Of a DNA stretch of 64,000 nucleotides, positions 1 to 9,928 are shown one piece after another. The stretch comes from Selaginella moellendorffii (taxonomy: Eukaryota > Plantae > Lycopodiophyta): contig NW_003314352.1 in the NCBI RefSeq assembly GCF_000143415.4, forward strand, positions 426,278-490,277, written 5' to 3'. Every line of letters begins with the position of its first letter. The first letter of the stretch is position 1. The position numbers and the translations under genes were made by a program. The notes below the pieces were generated by a model. That model saw only the letters and a program-made list of their open reading frames with translations, searched no databases and was not told where the DNA came from.

Positions 1-1394
1 TCTCGCCGCGGCGCTCGGTCGAAAACCTCCGCTGCCTCCGCTAGAAAACCATTCTGCGCATACGCCACGATCATCACATTCCACGCGACCGAATCCTTCT
101 CCTTCATGGACTCGAAGATGGCGCTTGATACAGCCAGATGCCCGGCCTGGGCATATCCATAAACCATCGCGGTCTCGGTCACCGCGTCTCTCTGCGGGGA
201 AAGATCAAAGAGATCCTTCGCGGGATCCAAGCTCCCGTGCTGGAGGTACGCCGCGATCATGACGTTCCAGGAGACCGTGTCGCGGCCGGGCATCCGATCG
301 AAGACCCCGCGCGCCCGCTCGACCTCGGCGTTGCGCGAGTAGGCCCGGATCATCGAGTTCCACGACACGATGTTTTGCTCCTCGGCGGCGTCAAACAGGC
401 TCTTGGCGTCGTCCAGGCAGCCGTTCTCGGCGTAGCCCGTGATGATCGAGTTCCAGGAGGCGACGTCGCGGACGGGCATGGCATCGAAGAGGCGGCGAGC
501 GGATTGGAGGTCGCCCAGCTCGCCGAATCCGGCGATGAGCGCGTTCCACGCCCAGGAGGACGTCGGGGCGTCCTTGTTGGGCATGGATTCGAAGAGCGCC
601 GCCGCCTCGTCCAGGCAGCCGTGCTGCGCGTAGCCGGACACCATGACCGTCCACGTCACGACGCTCTGCTCGGGCATCCGATCGAACACCACCCTCGCGC
701 GCTCCAGGTCCCCCTTTTGGGCAAATGCCGCGACGAGCGAGTTCCACGAGTAGGTATCTCTGTGAAGCATGGAGTGGAAGATTTTCAGTGCTTGTTCTGT
801 CAACCCCTCCTTTCCGTAAACCTGGATCATGATGTTCCAAGAGATGATCCCCGGACTGGGAATAGAATCAAACATCGCTCTGGCTTTCAGCATGTGCCCG
901 TTTTGGGCATACGCTGCGAGCATCAAGTTCCACGCAAACATGTCGCGTTCGGGCATTTTCTCGAAGGCAAAGTTGGCGAGGTCGATCCGGCGGTGGTGAA
1001 GGAGCCCCGCCAGCAGCGTGTTCCACGTAATCGCGTTCCACGCAGGCATCTGGTCGAAGGTACGCCGGGCGTCCTCCAGATGCCCCGACTGGGCATAAGC
1101 CTTGACCATGATGGTCCACGAGTAGACGTTCCTCTCGCGGATTCTCTCCAGCGCCTGGAGAGCGTCCCCGGCGGAGGAGCAGGCTCCGTACATCTGGACG
1201 AGGGTGTTGCCCAGGAACGTGTCGCGGTCGAGGCCGTGGCTGGCGATGTGGGCGTGGATCCGGCGGCCCTCTTGGAGCGCGCCCAGATCGGCGCATTGGC
1301 GGAGCGCGGCGGCGTAGGCGGCGGAGGTGGGGATCGCATTGGGGCGCAAGAGATCGGTCAGGGAGTCGCGCAGGGAAGAGAGGAGCAAACGCAT
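1..1394 (-). CDS. PLS-class pentatricopeptide repeat protein, 3' end runs off the window
   Basis: Manual translation from ATG at 1394: MRLLLSSLRD...LRQCADLGALQEGRRIHAHI...DTFLGNTLVQMYG, then repeated ~31-aa motifs (RDMFAWNLMLAAYAQNGH, RDVASWNSIITGYAENG). Intronless and open to position 1. Confidence 0.93.
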   Translation of the reverse strand, partial: MRLLLSSLRDSLTDLLRPNAIPTSAAYAAALRQCADLGALQEGRRIHAHIASHGLDRDTFLGNTLVQMYGACSSAGDALQALERIRERNVYSWTIMVKAYAQSGHLEDARRTFDQMPAWNAITWNTLLAGLLHHRRIDLANFAFEKMPERDMFAWNLMLAAYAQNGHMLKARAMFDSIPSPGIISWNIMIQVYGKEGLTEQALKIFHSMLHRDTYSWNSLVAAFAQKGDLERARVVFDRMPEQSVVTWTVMVSGYAQHGCLDEAAALFESMPNKDAPTSSWAWNALIAGFGELGDLQSARRLFDAMPVRDVASWNSIITGYAENGCLDDAKSLFDAAEEQNIVSWNSMIRAYSRNAEVERARGVFDRMPGRDTVSWNVMIAAYLQHGSLDPAKDLFDLSPQRDAVTETAMVYGYAQAGHLAVSSAIFESMKEKDSVAWNVMIVAYAQNGFLAEAAEVFDRAPRR

Positions 1395-1528
1395 AAAACG
1401 AGAGCGGCCGGATCGAACGGCCCATATTGTCTAGAATCGACGGTACTGTTTAAATCCGTGGTAATTTAGGGTTCTTGAGTTGATTGTTCAACTCAATCTG
1501 TCAATCCTTATTATGTTTGGACTAAACT

Positions 1529-2506
1529 TTAATGAAAAGTCACTGAAAGCTTATTGTTGTTATGCTCACTCTCTCCCACGAGAGGAACAACAATGACCGA
1601 GAGATTGTCACTGCTCCCACTTTCAAGTGCGTCCTCCACGATCATCACAGCAGCCACCTGAGAAAGTCCACTCCTCGATTCATGGTCCAGTGCTCCAGAT
1701 CCTCTAGCAATGATGACTGTGTTGCACACGTCCTGGTTCGACATCCTCTGGAAGATCCCGTCCGAAGCAAGCACCAGAAACTCTTCATTACTGTTCCCAA
1801 TCCTGTACTCCACAACATCTGCTTGTGCACTCACGCCAAAAGCTTTGAATTCCATGTCTCCAATCACCCGAGACACTGCTAGCTCTCCATTCACTCTTCC
1901 AAACTCGACAAAGCCTCCGGCAGCCTCAATCCGACGCCTCTCCTCTGCCAACTCCGGGTGGTGATCTTTGCTGAGCTGAGTGCTGTCCATTTCTATCAAA
2001 TTCGTTGTTGAGTTTTTCCGTGCCACACAAACCAGAGCTCTCGAGTCGCCCACGTTTCCCACCATCGCCACTTGTGGAGTGACCACTGCAATGCATGCTG
2101 TGGAGCCGGAGTACCATGCTTGCTTGTGAGCCTTCTCCATGAACATGTTCTCCACGTCCTCGATTGCCATTTGTAAGGCCTCGCCAAGTCTCTGGCCTTC
2201 TGCGAGGCGTCTGGAGAAGACGGGGTAGAATGTGTTAGCTGCAAAGTCACTGGCCCCTGAACTGCCGTGGCCGTCAAACACTCCAAAAACACCAAAGTCG
2301 GCATGGCTTGAAACAACCAGCACTCTGTCCTCCTGCTTAGACCTGTGACCACTACTGCCTGCTGTGCCATATGACCAGCTGTTTTTCCCGTCTACACTAA
2401 AATTTATGTCCTTGAGACCATTCTGACTAGCCAGCTCGCCAAATAGGAAGACATAGCACAAGTATAGGGAACTCACCATGAAGAGAGCACAGAGTAGCGG
2501 CTTCAT
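1529..2506 (-). CDS. Protein phosphatase 2C with hydrophobic N-terminus
   Basis: Single 325-aa ORF with the PP2C motifs RxxQED, FGVFDGHG, GSTA, NVGDSR, DHHP, RVNGELAVSRVIGD, LASDG and SSDNLS. Confidence 0.95.
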   Translation of the reverse strand: MKPLLCALFMVSSLYLCYVFLFGELASQNGLKDINFSVDGKNSWSYGTAGSSGHRSKQEDRVLVVSSHADFGVFGVFDGHGSSGASDFAANTFYPVFSRRLAEGQRLGEALQMAIEDVENMFMEKAHKQAWYSGSTACIAVVTPQVAMVGNVGDSRALVCVARKNSTTNLIEMDSTQLSKDHHPELAEERRRIEAAGGFVEFGRVNGELAVSRVIGDMEFKAFGVSAQADVVEYRIGNSNEEFLVLASDGIFQRMSNQDVCNTVIIARGSGALDHESRSGLSQVAAVMIVEDALESGSSDNLSVIVVPLVGESEHNNNKLSVTFH

Positions 2507-3133
2507 GATCCCTAGATTAATAACAGATTCTAATAGGTTAAATTATATGCTTATTCATTTTGGTGGAGTCGTGGGAGGAGAATCCAGAATGTTTGTGCAG
2601 GTAGGAGTCGAATTTGCGCGCATCCGGTTGGATGGATCAACACTACTGTCTTCGTGTCTTTGGATGCCATCCAGGTGTGTGCGGTAGGCTGATCTTAAGC
2701 GGTGCTCCACCGCTGTATAAGCCATAGGCCAAAATCAGGTGAAGCGGTGGGTGTCGGAAAGCTTAGAAATTCTCTCAAAATTGAAAACCTGTGTACCAAC
2801 TTACTTGGATCCAGAGCATCAATCCCAGCACGAGAACCAAGTAAGAAGCTCTGTCGTTTGGATGCTGCTCGCTGGAGAAACGCTTGCGCATAGCAGACCT
2901 TTCGCTGTTTCTGGATCCAAGAAAAGCCACAGAGACACAGAGAGAGAGAGAAGAGCACACGAGTTGCACTGGATGAACAGGCTCTCGTCTTTGAAGGTGA
3001 AGACCGGTTGGCTGCTACTGCCCGAGTTGTGAATTACATGCAGTGAATTTCCTGGAGAAAATTGATTTCCTATGAACATAAGCATCGGTTTGTTTAGATA
3101 GATCTGCTTTTAAACACTTTCTTTATCCACTGT

Positions 3134-5351
3134 TTAGAACTTTTTTTCAGGATCTTCAATAAGAAACCCTTCGGAGGTGAATGAAAAGGGAAGTCTGGTG
3201 CTCCAACAAGATACGTAGCCATCATAATCCTTAAATGCAAGGAGGTCTGTTGCAGCTACCCAGGCCCTCCAGGTGGGTTCATCCTTTATGACAAAGTGAA
3301 CCTACAGTTTCAAACACAGAGTTAAAAAACGCATGTCTAATTCAGGGTAGCTTACCTCAATGGACACTTTAGCACTTTTGAGTGCCTTTTGTACGCTTTC
3401 TACAGCAATCCATGCCGCTTTATCCAGAGGAAACCTGAAATACAATGCGAACTCAGTATCCAAGAAGGAAGGTGTGAGTACAAACCCGCCATGTCCGCAG
3501 GAGATAGCTGGGAGCGCTATGTGCTTAACGCCCTCCCCGCAAGCAAATGATATAGCATCCCTGTGATAGCAAAAACACAATGTATTGAATCTGCTACTCA
3601 CTCCGGCATACCTGTAAGTGAGACCAAGATGCTCCACAGCTTCCGTCTCCCTGACTTTGGAGTATTTTAGGCCTTGAGTAATAATGATTTTATATGCTGG
3701 CAGTCCTGCTGAAGGGCTGAGAAACAAGTTAGTTAAAAGATAATAAAAACAAAATAAGGAAAGACAATTACATGATATCCAAGCCAGTAAAGGAACCAGT
3801 AGCAAAACATATTTCTGAAAAGACAAAAGCTCATGTCAAATGCCAAATACCCCTTTGCTTTACCTCTGTGTATTTGATCTTCCACAGGAATTACAATAGC
3901 ATCATTCTTTCCGTCCACAAACCACTCACTTATGTCCCCGCTTTTAATCACAAACTTGCAAGAGCCGACTTTACAAACAAGCTTGAGGTCCTTTTCCTGA
4001 TCAAAAGCCACTAAACCTCAAACCACAAATTCGGACAATCGAAAAAACAAGAATGATAAATTTGAAGCATTATTACCTTGAGGTCCATCACCCTTATGCA
4101 GGGGTCCCTGCGAGGTCGGGGCTCGCAAGAGGTGACGGGTTCGGGTAATTGGGGGTTCCCATTATCTGAAAACAGTAATATGGTTATATAGCTACAATTA
4201 GTTTATGGATGTACTGTAGTAACTGTACATACCTAGGGGGCGCAAACCATGGGGTATAACACCATATAACTCGTCTTCGTCTTCAAACTCTTGAAACTCA
4301 TCTTCAAACTCATCTTCAAACTCATTTTCGTCTTCAGACACAGATTCCTCCGCAGGATCGGGAAATATTTCGATTGGGCCTTCCTCTTTGTCCTCTGCAG
4401 CGCTGTGTAGCTGTCCACTCACCTCTTGAGTCACTCCATTGGCCACTTTCTGTTGAAGCTGCTCCCCAACAGCAACTACTGCGAATGTCCTGCATTCATC
4501 AGTCCCTGTACCGGCAATCTGGCGGCACGCTTCCTCGAGGCCCTGTCCATTACAAGCTCGTTTGCGGATCAGAAGTATGCAATACTCACAAGTGCGTCAA
4601 TCCGAGTGGTGAAAACGCTTGTATAATCGCTATCTATGTGACGCTCGAGGTGTCTTGACGCAACGATAAGGTAAGAGTCTGCTGTAGTCAGGCGCTCCTG
4701 CGTGCACAAGCTTCCAGAATAAGAAATTTCAACAAAAACATTAGTACCTTGTGATAATAAAAGGGTAGACTGCTACTTTGCGGGGGGCTAGCATTTTTGA
4801 GACGGTGGAGAGAACTTGGACGAGTTAGCCTCTCGTCCTTCCCACTTCGGCACAGCATCACTGACGCAAGGGCCTCGCCAAACACATACACATGCGCGTC
4901 TCCAAGCACCACCACCAAGGACCTGTTTTGCGCACACCAATTCTGTAACCACAGCAACAGCAGTAATCCATCAGACAAGAAGAGAGATCACCACATACCC
5001 AGCAATCTGATGTTCCCACCACAGCCCGCAGCTCGTCATTCATCCTTCAAACGAGCCACCCATATTTTAAAAAAACGTACCATGCACATATTCTTACTTT
5101 GTGAATGCGTGCTCCAGAGCTTGTGGCGTACCGCACGGTGACAGCTCCAGGGATGCTCGAATGTGACCCATGAGTCGAGATCGGCGTAACTTGAGAAGTT
5201 CGAGATGTACAGAGTAGAGGTGCACATCTCGCGCGTTTGGAAGAGCTGCATGGAAAATGACCACAACCCGCTCCTGCACTCTTCCTAGCTCCGCCAAGCA
5301 CAGCACATGTCCACTCATATCCTCGGGCGGCTCCGCCATCACTGCCTCCAT
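3134..5351 (-). CDS. Multi-exon fusion: degenerate PP2C-like domain, acidic linker, degenerate macrodomain (start codon uncertain)
   Basis: GT-AG splicing gives one frame. It reads ...ALEHAFTKMNDEL...SLVVVLGDAHVYV...VMLCRSGKDERLTR...ERLTTADSYLIVASRHL (PP2C fold), then an EDEFEDEF tract. It continues KSGDISEWFVDGKNDAIV...LPAYKIIITQG...VKHIALPAISCGHGGFPLDKAA...VHFV (macrodomain), with the stop at 3134-3136. Confidence 0.75.
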
Positions 5352-5624
5352 CGCCGCCGTCTTCTTCTTTCCTCGATCGGAGCAGCCGGAGCAGCGGCAG
5401 TCCTCCTCGCTCACGCCTACCGCCGCAGCATTCTGCGCTACTGTAGGAAAAAGCCTTTTTAGGGGTAGGGCTTTAGGAAATTAACTATACCATGGTTCCT
5501 ACATTTTAGGAGGCCCATGTCAGGCCTCCACGACCAGAAGGAGGAGCAGGAGAAAGCGCTGGGCATTACAAAGATGGTGGACATGGTGACCACTATGACG
5601 AGCTCAAGACTAAGTGGCCATGGC

Positions 5625-5892
5625 TTAGCCTTCTCCATAAACATGCCTTCCATGTCCTGACCTTAAGTCAGTGGCCCCTGAACCGCCGTGGCCGTCGAAC
5701 ACTCCAAAAACACCAAAGTTGACGAAACAACCAGCACTCTGTCCCCCTGCTTAGACCTGTGACCTGTGACTGCTTGCTGTGCCTTTCGCGTCTACACTGA
5801 AGTTTATGTCGTCGAGACCATTCTGACTAGCCAGCTCGCCAAACAGGAAGACATAGAGGGAACTCACCGTGAAGAGCGCGCAGAGTAGCCCC
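5625..5892 (-). pseudogene. Decayed partial duplicate of the 5' part of the PP2C gene at 1529-2506
   Basis: Aligns by eye to ~2130-2500 (e.g. gagaccattctgactagccagctcgccaaa; ggcccctgaac.gccgtggccgtc.aacactccaaaaacaccaaagt) with several deletions. Confidence 0.88.
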
Positions 5893-6489
5893 TTAAAAAT
5901 CCATAGTGTGGAAGTCTAACAAATCAAATTATTAGAAACGTCTTAGTTCGAGGCAATTGGGTTGCGTCTCTTGAATTCCATCATTGTCAAAAGATTCATT
6001 CATCACCAGAGCAAACCGCCTCTCCTTCGCTGCAAAGGGGTACGCAACACACGCGCTGCAGTATCGTGTTACTTCGGCCAAGTGCTTGATCCCAGCCGGC
6101 TTAAAGCAGCTAAGTTGGAAATCAAGCACATACCAGGACGTCAGTAAGCTTCTCTTGGCACTCTTCGATTTCTCTCAGCCGCCGCCACGGCGACTTCACA
6201 GCTTCTGCGGATGAAAACAGCGAGCTCCTTCGTCCAAAAGAGCATATCAAGAAACACGCTGAAATTCTAGCATTTTTTGCGATTTCACCAAAGTACTTCT
6301 ATACGTCCGATCATCCTAGCACCACTCTTGTCGTTGGTATCGTCGCCATTGTCAAAATCTGCCACGGGCGGACGAGGGCAACAAGAATGCGCCATGACAT
6401 TGCTGATGCGCGACCGGATCGGACGGCTCATATTGCCTCGAATCAATGGTACCGCTTAAATCACTGGCATTCTAGGGCTCTTGGCCAAA

Positions 6490-7688
6490 ATGGAGGCCCC
6501 AGTTTTCCAGCTGAGGACGGGGGCGCGCGCTCCCGCTGTCGGATTTGGAAGTGGGACTTTCACCAGCGCAGCAGAAATCAAGGAGGCGGTTCTTAGCGCA
6601 ATCAAGGTTTGCTCGACTTCTTTGTTCGCCGTTTGTTCCCACAAATTTTGGGACCTCGAACAGCTTGGCTATCGACACTTTGACACTGCTGCCGGCTATG
6701 GCACCGAGACAGCGATCGGCGAGGCGCTCGCGATCGCTTTCGATGCCGGATTGGTGACGAGGGAGGAGGTTTTCCTGACGACGAAGCTGAGATCCGACGA
6801 CCATGACCCGCAAGATGTTCTTCCGGCATTGAAGAAGAGCCTCAGGCTAGGACAATCTTTCATCTTTTCTTGGTAGATTGCGGACTAAATCTTCTCTTTC
6901 TCCAGTGCTCTACGGGTGGAATTCGTGGACTTGTTTTTGATACACGCGCCTGTCAAGCTTACAAAAGGAGCTCGTTTTCCACCCACGGAACACGAAATTC
7001 TTCCTCTGGACATTCCAGGCACCTGGAAGGCAATGGAGGATTGTTTCGACAAAGGACTCGCGAAAGCCATCGGTGTTAGCAACTTTAGCTCCAAGAAACT
7101 GGGAGACTTGCTCGAATACGCTCGAATCCCTCCGGCCGCAAACCAGGTAACAAAAGGAAAAGTCCATGGATCTCAAGGAAAACTAACCAAGAAATCTTTT
7201 CTCGCAAGGTGGAGCTCCATCCCATTTGGCAGCAAAAGAAACTTAGAGACTTCTGTAGAGCTCACGACGTCCAGGTCTTTGCATGGTCACCTCTCGGGGG
7301 CCTCGGCAAAGTCTGGGGATCCAAATCCGTGCTCGAGGATCCCGTCGTCCTGGAGCTCGCAGCAAAGCACCACAAATCTCCTGCCCAGGTACTACAAGCT
7401 TTCTGCTCGTCCAGGACGAAACTCCACTTCTCTTCTCGGCTATCTTTTGCTGCACAGATCGTGCTTCGGTGGCTCACGCAGATCGGCGTCGGCGCCGTCG
7501 TCAAGAGCTACAATCCACAGCGACTGCGTGAGAACATTCAAAGCTTCGACTTCGACTTGCTTCCCGAGGACCTCGAGACGATCGAGTCCACCGTGCCGCA
7601 AAGGAGACTAGCAGCATGGGAGTGGCTTTGCAACTCCACCACCAGCCCGTACAAGACGGTCCAAGAGCTATGGGACGACGAGATCTAA
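6490..7688 (+). CDS. Aldo-keto reductase (plant AKR4-like), 5 exons
   Basis: Catalytic tetrad motifs [16 protein letters not shown] and LIHAP; also [22 protein letters not shown] and the C-terminus ELWDDEI*. Confidence 0.95.
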
Positions 7689-8269
7689 CTCCAAACTCCG
7701 CGAAGAGTACAATCCCGTGAGCGTGACAGGCACGGAAGCAAAGGAATCGAATTCAGCGACAAACCAACACGTGAAACGAAACAATGGATCTCTCCATCTC
7801 TGGACTGGAACGGGACGCACTTATTCACCGACAACACGCCAATCACATCAAACATACTACCACAAAAATGCGAAGAACTCCAGGCTTTTTTAATGAGCTT
7901 GCAGACAAGCAGCAGTGGACCTCACTCACCTCACCTTTTACCTCACCTTCCTTGAGCGGGCAGTCACTCGGGCTCTTCATTTCCGGGCCCATCTTTCTTT
8001 TCACGGATTCAATGCGGCGGTGGTTGCTGTTGCTACTGCCGTGGTGGCCTGGCTGGAAAATTACGAGTTTTTTCAATGCAAAGAACCTGAGAGCCCACCT
8101 CTGTCTCTCTCCGGGAAGAATGAGCAAGTACTACACTGGCCGGCGACTTTGATTTTCTTTCTTTCCTTTCCACCGCTGCTACTGCAAGCAGCAATGGATC
8201 CGAAGGATTATTCTAAGAGAGAAAGGAATAAACGAAGATGGAATCCATCAAACCAGCAGCAGCAGCAGC

Positions 8270-9928
8270 TTAGCATGTGTTGATCCCGTCCTTGCAGTCG
8301 CTGGTAAGATCGCCGAAAGTTTCGATACGCTTCTTCCCTCTGAGAAACATCTCCGAGTCCACGGCGTCTCTCATGTAGCCGTCGAACTCCACCGGCTTTC
8401 CCCTCGTCAAGGCCATGGTCTCGTTATACCACTCGCTGCCAGGCCCCCAGAGATCCTTGTAGTCGTCCAGCACCGACACTTCATACTTCTCCTTCAGCTT
8501 GTGGAAGAAACCGGGACTTCTCTCGTTGGTCGATATGTAAACGTAGCGTTGAGCATCAATCCTTCCCGAGAGCTTGCTCAACACCGCCTCGGCCGAGGTA
8601 TCCTTGTCGAGGTTAGGCCAAAGTTGCCTGTTCGCAGCCTTCTCACCTCTCTCGACTCGTACGGCATCGAAGTCCCACTCCAGCTTGCCGCAAATCGTGT
8701 TGACGATATTCATGAGTCTCTTGGATTTCCAGATCATATGCCAGGGCCGCTGGATCACCTTCTCGGTCTCCCCCTCGCAAACGCGATACCAATAGTTGTC
8801 CGGTTCGCTGCTCTCCCGGAAGCTCCTCTCGACGGTCGTGCTCGTCTCGTCCCTGAGCTCCATCGGACTCACTTTCACATTGTCCGAGATCACCCTCTTG
8901 CGAATCTTGCCGAGCTTGTGCTTCTTGTTCAACTTGGAGAATTCCTTGAGCTCGATCACCGAGGTCGACTCCCGGAGGTGATCGAAATCAATGTAGAACC
9001 TCAAGTCTTTCCCGGGCTCGTCACCTCGGCCAGGAAAGTTATCCTTCCCCGAGAGACAAAAGCCCAGATCGACAACCAGCGTCCGGTTCAAGTACTGAGC
9101 TTCTCCGAGCGCGCAGAGGAAGCTCCACATGAATTGCTTCATCCCCTTGCAATGATCCCCTCCTCGAGTGTAGTACAAGAACCTTCCGACGCTCGAAGAA
9201 TCATCATCGCCACGAGACGAGATGGAATCGTTGAAGGCATTGATCCCGTGAAACCTCTGGAGCCGCGCATTCCTCCCAGAGTGCCAGTCCCCCACGTCGG
9301 TCACTTGATACTCGCAAGAGGGCTCCAGCACTAGAGTGTAGCGCCGGTAGTCCCTGTACATCCTCTTGGATCTCTCCCTCCTCGGCCGGTACTTCCACGC
9401 CACATCGCAGCTCCTCTCATCCCCTCCCTGGACGGGGACTCTGTACTCGAAAGCGTCGATCTCCGGGAACTTCTCCAAGTTGACCTTCTCGATCGCGGCT
9501 AGCACCCCCGGATCCGAGCAATTCACAACAATGTCGCTTTCCACGCACCCACGATCCTTGCCGCCATTATTGAGCCCCCTGGTAGCCTCCAGGGCCTTTT
9601 CGGCCGCGTCCTGGGCGTCCTCGATGGAGATCGAGCCCCCGGCTCTGGAATTCGCCGGTGCAAGGGCGTCCTCGCCAGTCAGGAAGATCGATCCTGCCGT
9701 CTGAAACGTGGCGTTGTCCACGACCTTGTTGAAGAGCTGCTTCATCCGGACGGCGCTGGCGGCGGTGTCGAGCCACGGATCCGGCGGCTGGTACGTGACG
9801 GCGAAGACGGTGAGCAGCAGCACCACGGCGACGAAGAGGCCGAACAAGGCGTTGCCGATCGCTCGCGCGGCGCGCTGCCGGAGCGATTCCGGCGCCGCAT
9901 TTCCGGATTTCATCGTCGCGCCGGCCAA
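8270..9928 (-). CDS. SUB1: SUB1 (short under blue light 1)-like membrane-anchored protein
   Basis: 552-aa ORF with an N-terminal TM segment followed by YQPPDPW. Contains LYYTRGGDHCKGM, YWYRVCEG and WKSKRLMNIV, and ends DCKDGINTC, recognised as the Arabidopsis SUB1 family. Confidence 0.88.
   Translation of the reverse strand: MAGATMKSGNAAPESLRQRAARAIGNALFGLFVAVVLLLTVFAVTYQPPDPWLDTAASAVRMKQLFNKVVDNATFQTAGSIFLTGEDALAPANSRAGGSISIEDAQDAAEKALEATRGLNNGGKDRGCVESDIVVNCSDPGVLAAIEKVNLEKFPEIDAFEYRVPVQGGDERSCDVAWKYRPRRERSKRMYRDYRRYTLVLEPSCEYQVTDVGDWHSGRNARLQRFHGINAFNDSISSRGDDDSSSVGRFLYYTRGGDHCKGMKQFMWSFLCALGEAQYLNRTLVVDLGFCLSGKDNFPGRGDEPGKDLRFYIDFDHLRESTSVIELKEFSKLNKKHKLGKIRKRVISDNVKVSPMELRDETSTTVERSFRESSEPDNYWYRVCEGETEKVIQRPWHMIWKSKRLMNIVNTICGKLEWDFDAVRVERGEKAANRQLWPNLDKDTSAEAVLSKLSGRIDAQRYVYISTNERSPGFFHKLKEKYEVSVLDDYKDLWGPGSEWYNETMALTRGKPVEFDGYMRDAVDSEMFLRGKKRIETFGDLTSDCKDGINTC

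Follow-up and report, generated by a model that had tools for sequence, protein, structure and literature searches.

The window analysed here, a 64,000-nucleotide stretch of the Selaginella moellendorffii contig NW_003314352.1 (positions 426,278 to 490,277), carries on its minus strand, at 3134-5351, a spliced and transcribed gene. Its predicted protein consists of an N-terminal half of about 226 amino acids (aa), an acidic linker at residues ~227-334, as a preliminary description of this stretch had proposed, and a half that matches part of the Macro profile. The gene belongs to a multi-copy Selaginella family, and its N-terminal half is under stronger constraint than the rest of the protein. 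These observations are, to our mind, somewhat better explained than not by a protein that is expressed and non-catalytic and belongs to a young family with fast turnover, in which a diverged PPM-like (PP2C-like) domain is the selected binding module and the macro remnant probably lacks canonical ADP-ribose binding.

The protein, on this reading, has three parts. The N-terminal domain would most likely be a strongly diverged PPM/PP2C fold of short, bacterial-like size, with SRH in the place of SDG and EC in the place of DN. The linker of about 100 aa is acidic and indel-rich and probably disordered, and the C-terminal part is a MacroD/macroH2A-like macrodomain from which N-x-A-N, the GGG phosphate loop and a portion of the helix after it are missing. 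We infer that neither half is catalytic. The protein would act, if at all, as a non-enzymatic binder through the conserved PPM-like domain, with the macro remnant as a weakly constrained structural appendage presumably devoid of canonical ADP-ribose binding.

Gene structure and transcription

The reading frame opens with an ATG at 5351 and its stop codon ends at 3134. Twelve exons, with boundaries fixed to GT-AG, are separated by 11 introns of 47-80 nucleotides (nt) and, read from the first ATG, join into a single open frame of 534 codons; a six-frame listing of open reading frames (ORFs) splits the gene into pieces. RNA data were mapped to window positions 2600-6000 from two raw RNA-seq runs (X14, X15) and a set of transcript contigs (X1). 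Nine of the 11 introns were seen as RNA joints, reading CT..AC on the plus strand and GT..AG on the minus strand, and introns 4 (4543-4589) and 6 (3997-4076) were placed from loose ends of X1 contigs. The preliminary description had read about a dozen short exons in one frame and had named RNA-seq as the check on their junctions; the joints together with the frame check gave 12 exons at the same coordinates. The exons, all on the minus strand, are as follows.

Exon 1, 5098-5351, minus: aa 1-85; N-terminal part of the PPM-like half, with no match outside the family; intron 1 as RNA joint, frame check
Exon 2, 4999-5044, minus: aa 85-100, MNDELRAVVGTSDCW; RNA joints for introns 1 and 2, GT-AG boundaries
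Exon 3, 4748-4942, minus: aa 101-165; beta-hairpin region SLVVVLGDAHVYVFGEALASVMLCRSGK, opposite the GDSR region of PP2C; RNA joints
Exon 4, 4590-4697, minus: aa 166-201; YLIVASRH against PP2C fLvLASDG; a contig identical to the window crosses intron 3
Exon 5, 4233-4542, minus: aa 202-305; end of the PPM-like half, GTDECRTFAVVAV against gSxDNitvvvv, then the acidic repeat-containing linker; intron 5 joint
Exon 6, 4077-4165, minus: aa 305-334; last, Pro-rich part of the linker; intron 5 joint, intron 6 from contig ends
Exon 7, 3864-3996, minus: aa 335-379; macro beta1-beta2, KFVIKSGDI...NDAIVIPVEDQIHR; N-x-A-N and the GGG loop are missing here; no Pfam or NCBIfam macro match earlier in the protein; intron 7 joint
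Exon 8 (43-nt microexon), 3772-3814, minus: aa 379-393, EICFATGSFTGLDII; RNA joints on both sides; the NCBIfam match begins here
Exon 9, 3612-3716, minus: aa 393-428; GLPAYKIIITQG corresponds to macro LPAKyVIHtVGP; RNA joints, Pfam Macro match, PDB profile matches
Exon 10, 3486-3560, minus: aa 428-453; HIALPAISCGHGG, the retained macro loop 2 (second phosphate-binding loop); RNA joints; aligns to PARP14 and macroH2A1.1
Exon 11, 3356-3434, minus: aa 453-479; FPLDKAAWIAVESVQKALK, the helix following loop 2; RNA joints
Exon 12, 3134-3301, minus: aa 480-534 and stop; final strand of the macro fold (VHFVIKDE), then a variable tail; intron 11 joint in five raw reads and one contig

The 43-nt microexon, with its GT-AG sites, is also present in the intact paralogues, and RNA reads of the type of one of them (locus L005) include it. 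We take it to be the C-x-T-G...I-T macro strand, having read it against the E. coli YmdB sequence, a comparison that provides a lead only. Within the linker, at 4290-4345 on the minus strand, a 12-nt repeat (GATGAGTTTGAA-like) encodes EFED/DEFE; four amino acid changes separate the alleles there, and in-frame indels separate the paralogues.

The allele of the gene lies on scaffold GL377569.1 (locus L004), where it is annotated as SELMODRAFT_405952, a "Macro domain-containing protein" of 522 aa (P0007). Some spliced X1 contigs are identical to the window, for example across intron 3, and others are 95-99% alike. Reads and contigs of the 95-99% class carry variants of the L004 haplotype, and a loose end in the 5' untranslated region matches L004 as well. 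Because the X1 contigs include both kinds, both alleles are transcribed. Read depth was low, and no single record spans the whole transcript. Run X8, whose contigs run through the introns and are identical to the window, is genomic DNA.

Constraint and ancestry of the N-terminal half

Ratios of non-synonymous to synonymous substitution (dN/dS) were calculated by the Nei-Gojobori method with a Fisher test; the values rest on few substitutions, and they could be distorted by gene conversion between paralogues.

Window against allele: N-terminal half 0.10 (12 synonymous to 4 non-synonymous, p 2e-5); linker 0.52; macro half 0.49
Three intact paralogues: N-terminal half 0.40-0.52 (p 2e-4 to 9e-3); linker 0.67-1.10; macro half 0.63-0.86, not significant

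The unrecognisable N-terminal half is thus the constrained part of the protein, and constraint on the macro half is not demonstrable. Exons were more alike than introns both in the comparison with an intact paralogue (87% against 79%, L005) and in that with the allele (97.2% against 95.1%). The preliminary description had called the gene maintained and had proposed dN/dS as a check. That view held for the frame and splice sites, which both alleles and no fewer than two paralogues keep intact, and for the N-terminal half (0.10-0.52, significantly below 1); it did not extend to the macro half (0.49-0.86) or the linker (0.5-1.1), whose values were not significant.

Comparison with known families suggests that the N-terminal half is probably a diverged PPM fold. 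Whole-protein searches used the allele protein P0007, which is about 97% identical to the window's protein. Among the ESM-Atlas feature neighbours of residues 1-235, PPM, SpoIIE and PP2C_2 clusters appeared at 0.94-0.95, and 25 of the 30 named matches belonged to the PPM clan. Against a profile built from 121 PP2Cs, the N-terminal half of the paralogue P0006 scored 5.0 bits, a value reached by none of 3000 shuffles, which are a lenient null. The alignment covers 63 residues, from the SDG strand (LIVASRH) via helices to gSxDN (GSDDC). The N-terminal half of P0007 scored 0.4 bits, a value reached by 60 of the 3000 shuffles, and its two local matches are collinear.

A hidden Markov model (HMM) of the family was also run against the same 121 PP2Cs, which are mutually related, so that the p-values of this reciprocal test are inflated. 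Real PP2Cs scored ~3.5 bits above their reversed or shuffled versions. At family positions 95-135, 69 of 78 local alignments contained GDSR, and at positions 155-200 the SDG motif was contained in 31 of 33, where ~9% would be expected by chance in either case. The two sets of matches fall in the correct order. The predicted order of helices and strands fits a short PPM, which is weak evidence.

The motif replacements listed in the preliminary description fared unequally in these alignments. The change from LASDG to VASRH was supported, with SDG opposite SRH in both hhalign and HMMER alignments. For GDSR, the proposed ALAS register was recovered in a minority (EALAS, ~12 of 69 local alignments); the motif mostly stood opposite LGDAHV, with its Asp kept (50 of 69). 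The final DN, described as absent, is EC here (GTDEC) and DC in some paralogues; the Asn is lost and an acidic residue is kept. The reading of LYSVHLE as a changed FGVFDGHG found no alignment support, as the first ~95 residues matched nothing. Among the PPM metal ligands, SDG is therefore SRH, DN is EC, the GDSR Asp is possibly kept (GDAH), and the positions of RxxxED and DGHGG could not be aligned. PPM catalysis would accordingly be lost, judging from SDG to SRH at the only alignable M1/M2 metal ligand. The claim that both active sites had been lost thus stood for the macro half and, in the PPM-like half, for that single ligand.

TAB1 is a PPM pseudophosphatase, and PHLPP2 is argued to be another (PMC12002173). 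In these proteins the metal positions are likewise diverged, and the domain is probably a binding module and not a catalyst. TAB1 and PHLPP are still found by PP2C profiles, whereas the present N-terminal half is not. It also differs from them in its shortness, in a motif spacing nearer to that of bacterial PPMs and in its fusion to a macrodomain. With a canonical plant PP2C such as the neighbouring gene at 1529-2506, the GDSR, SDG and DN regions align collinearly but weakly; there is no pairwise similarity, the eukaryotic insert between GDSR and SDG is absent, and RxxxED and DGHGG are not identifiable.

The macro remnant

P0007 scored 45.7 bits against the Pfam Macro family (PF01661), above the gathering cut-off of 22, over profile positions 47-117 of 118. 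The paralogues scored 40.9-55.8 bits, every member matching positions 46-118 only, and the window's own read-through ORF piece scored 22.2 bits. NCBIfam models of the YmdB/MacroD type matched at E 5e-15, from about position 53. The equivalog for YmdB O-acetyl-ADP-ribose deacetylase (NF001664) gave 55.4 bits, below its cut-off of 200 bits. The family profile found macrodomains in the PDB (PARP14, macroH2A1.1, GDAP2 and the MacroD type) at 2e-9 to 1e-7 over the same region of the protein, and the top Foldseek matches of a low-confidence AlphaFold2 model were all macrodomains.

The C-terminal two thirds are shared with MacroD/YmdB and macroH2A macrodomains (PF01661; PDB 5l9k, 1yd9, 3vfq), including the LPAK-like strand, the IAFPAISTG-x-x-GFP loop 2, the next helices and the last strand. 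The present protein also retains GDI, the adenine-contacting Asp (NDAIV) and loop 2 as PAISCGHGGFP. It differs from those macrodomains in the region between DAIV and the C-x-T-G strand, where eight residues (IPVEDQIH) stand in place of the ~32 of canonical members. The deletion of ~24 residues takes out N-x-A-N, loop 1 (GGG) and a portion of helix 1, and is common to all members of the family. Where N-x-A-N and the Gly-rich loop 1 would be expected the protein reads DAIVIPVEDQIHR, and no member is matched by the first ~45 positions of the Pfam profile or the first ~52 of the NCBIfam profile. This agrees with the preliminary description of a macrodomain that keeps GDI and AISCG-x-x-GFP, lacks N-x-A-N and the GGG loop, and has DAIV followed by IPVEDQIHR. 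The stump of loop 1 reads PVGGQ in most paralogues, VEDQ in this copy and VEGQ in the allele.

Non-binding macrodomains are known in macroH2A1.2 and macroH2A2, in which loop residues are changed and the full fold is retained; in the present gene, by contrast, a segment is deleted. Loss of catalysis in the macro half can be soundly inferred from its sequence, and the remnant probably does not bind ADP-ribose in the canonical way. The link to ADP-ribose drawn in the preliminary description was not borne out: the ~24 missing residues include binding loop 1, the stump is acidic in this copy, and the dN/dS of the macro half cannot be told apart from neutrality.

Family turnover, alternative explanations and genomic setting

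A word search with one family protein found 16 gene models that share the architecture, all from S. moellendorffii and on ten scaffolds; most combine the N-terminal half with Macro. After allowing for two assembled haplotypes, these represent roughly 8-10 loci. The architecture, which the preliminary description did not know from other plants, is not a one-off but is that of a multi-copy family. A HMMER search with exon 1 among 1.84 billion cluster representatives returned two proteins only, both from S. moellendorffii. The non-canonical motifs are common to all members. The exons of the window were mapped onto eight loci.

L004 (allele): 12 exons, GT-AG sites, frame kept
L005 (P0006): 12 exons, GT-AG sites, frame kept
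L007 (P0010): 12 exons, GT-AG sites, frame kept
L006 (P0005): 11-nt deletion in exon 1
L001 (P0001): several frameshifts, stop codons or splice-site losses
L002: damage of the same kinds as at L001
L008: appears damaged; contains an assembly gap
L009: appears damaged

Birth-and-death turnover is evident in the family, several of whose copies are pseudogenes, and makes a single maintained decoy less plausible. At paralogous loci, homology extends from 4-11 nt upstream of the ATG to 15-45 nt short of the stop, and the flanks are unrelated. Dispersed paralogues (window 3150-5362 against L001, L002 and L005-L009) are alike over the gene body only, introns included at 68-79% identity. Such homology suggests either duplication units that lack a promoter and make use of divergent ones, or gene conversion limited to the gene body. 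Several copies stand head-to-head with an unrelated gene, namely an aldo-keto reductase (here), a GDSL lipase, PARG or FAM32A. The neighbours of the other copies examined include GDSL lipase, isochorismatase, aldo-keto reductase, FAM32A, RMI1 and PARG (L007), with no called PP2C.

Several results weigh against the account given at the outset, and those on the N-terminal half bear on its ancestry. No Pfam PPM match was found at E<=10 (P0001, P0002 and the N-terminal half of P0001; families PF00481, PF13672 and PF07228), none at E<=1 for P0005, P0006, P0007, P0010 and P0012, and, up to an E of 10, no match of this half in NCBIfam or PDB sequence profiles. phmmer searches of exon pieces against the PDB gave nothing useful, a PADLOC scan gave nothing relevant, and a word search with the 174-aa read-through ORF gave nothing, its length window hiding full-length proteins. 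The preliminary description had proposed fold checks on each half. The macro half matched macrodomains; for the N-terminal half, hhalign of the family against the 121-sequence PP2C alignment returned a probability of 2.5%, with the SDG strand as best match and with controls only a few-fold worse. AlphaFold2 with a shallow family alignment reached a predicted local distance difference test (pLDDT) of 33 in the N-terminal half and 45 in the macro half, values too low to demonstrate a fold in either. The first ~95 residues align to no PPM motif, their sole matches being spurious ones to the SDG strand, and the leniency of the shuffles and the relatedness of the 121 PP2Cs temper the positive scores. 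An unrelated, lineage-specific domain that resembles PP2C motifs by chance would fit these findings, together with the P0007 score that some shuffles reached; this is a separate question, which cuts across the other readings. We consider such a domain improbable. Three motif regions match collinearly with a positional specificity far above chance expectation, the N-terminal half of P0006 beat all of its shuffles, the alignment-free language-model neighbours are consistently of the PPM clan, and the predicted secondary structure, as weak evidence, points the same way.

The remaining objections concern the gene as a whole. Expression is low, with some 20 reads per run, taken from 12% of each. 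Several paralogues are dead, with clear frameshifts in L001, L002 and L006 and apparent damage in L008 and L009. The macro half and linker are nearly neutral (0.49-1.1, neither significantly below 1), and the frame of the allele stops 12 codons before that of the window; with these features the gene as a whole could be on its way to being lost. A transcribed but functionless member of a decaying, lineage-specific family, its frame intact by chance and its transcripts noise from a neighbouring promoter, would account for all of this, for the deletions and lost splice sites of the damaged copies, for the absence of a gene call on scaffold GL377656.1 and for a duplicated unit that begins at the ATG without upstream sequence of its own. 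Decay of this kind is a serious contender that we nevertheless hold to be unlikely. Against it stand the low dN/dS of the N-terminal half between alleles and among the three intact paralogues, the retention of 22 of 22 splice dinucleotides and of the microexon in four intact copies, and an exon conservation 4-12 points above that of introns. Similarly diverged copies free of constraint are full of frameshifts, which makes an intact 1.6-kb frame in three loci unlikely by chance. It is highly improbable, in our view, that the macro half has kept its recognition of ADP-ribose or of some related nucleotide, with the protein, as reader or decoy, coupling ADP-ribosylation to a phospho-protein partner. 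The retained adenine-contacting Asp, loop 2 (PAISCGxGGFP) and core C-terminal fold are compatible with recognition, as are PVGGQ at a possible Gly-loop remnant in most paralogues and the head-to-head position of one paralogue with PARG. Opposed to it are the loss of N-x-A-N and loop 1 in every member, the acidic residues at the loop remnant of this copy and the lack of demonstrable constraint on the macro half. Pairing with PARG appears to be incidental, since the other copies examined adjoin unrelated genes (GDSL lipase, isochorismatase, aldo-keto reductase, FAM32A).

A more far-reaching version of the non-catalytic binder seems to us distinctly doubtful. The family would then consist of Selaginella- or lycophyte-specific double pseudoenzymes, with a dead PPM as selected binder and a truncated macro scaffold, and promoter-less gene-body duplicates would survive head-to-head with the promoter of another gene. 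If true, a fast-turnover family of double pseudoenzymes could serve as decoys or adaptors in stress or immune phospho-signalling. If the N-terminal half is confirmed as a PPM fold, the gene represents a rare fusion of two degenerate enzyme folds kept in several copies, and the combination of PPM-like and macro parts is an unusual architecture. No literature was found on a PP2C-macro fusion or on the present family. It is the unrecognisable N-terminal half that is under selection, rather than the annotated Macro domain. Practical value will stay limited until a partner or phenotype comes to light.

The results also expose annotation gaps in a reference lycophyte genome, both in the uncalled gene on this haplotype and in paralogue models that mis-splice the microexon or read through introns. 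Window positions 1-9000 are 100% identical to S. moellendorffii scaffold GL377656.1 (L003), where nothing is called between the aldo-keto reductase and the PP2C and the present gene is unannotated. The deposited models of L005 (P0006), L006 (P0005) and L001 (P0001), as well as P0003 and P0004, contain translated introns (e.g. VSIVYFRSANELVTCELVQ) or skip the microexon. The deposited P0010 model starts within exon 1 and skips the linker; the full 12-exon frame is present at L007.

Gene order at L004 is the same as in the window: DUF7074, aldo-keto reductase, the present gene, PP2C, a gene without Pfam match and a DEAH helicase. As the preliminary description had noted, the gene lies between a true PP2C and a PP2C remnant.

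1529-2506, minus: intact intronless PP2C (325 aa), a separate gene; Pfam PP2C E 1.1e-51
5585-5906, minus: frameshifted 5' PP2C remnant directly upstream of the gene's ATG, separate from it; tblastn match to aa 1-143 of the neighbouring PP2C with stops and gaps, blastn 79% nt identity over 273 nt

The neighbouring PP2C was found letter for letter on GL377656.1. No similarity was detected between the exons of the gene and this PP2C in pairwise BLASTP and tblastn comparisons. An origin of the N-terminal half as a recent duplicate of the neighbour was considered and is ruled out by these results and by the absence of a called PP2C beside the other copies examined. The adjacency is coincidental: none of those copies has a PP2C called nearby, and it is the neighbouring PP2C, not the present gene, that gave rise to the remnant.

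Further observations were made at the paralogous loci. At L007, the intact paralogue (791-2740, minus) lies ~75 bp head-to-head with the PARG gene (2817 onward, plus). At L005, positions 5296-5981 hold a partial tandem duplicate of the 3' half (about exon 7/8 to exon 12), downstream of the P0006 gene, and at L008 units of GDSL lipase plus family gene are tandemly repeated.

In the window, a few RNA reads lie at 5564-5677, with a loose end at 5626 that matched nothing in the window or the fetched loci. RNA reads of both strands were seen between the gene and the PP2C (2714-2941 and 2802-2955). Ten reads share a loose end at 2799, likewise without a match in the window or fetched loci, and the other haplotype lacks ~154 nt here.

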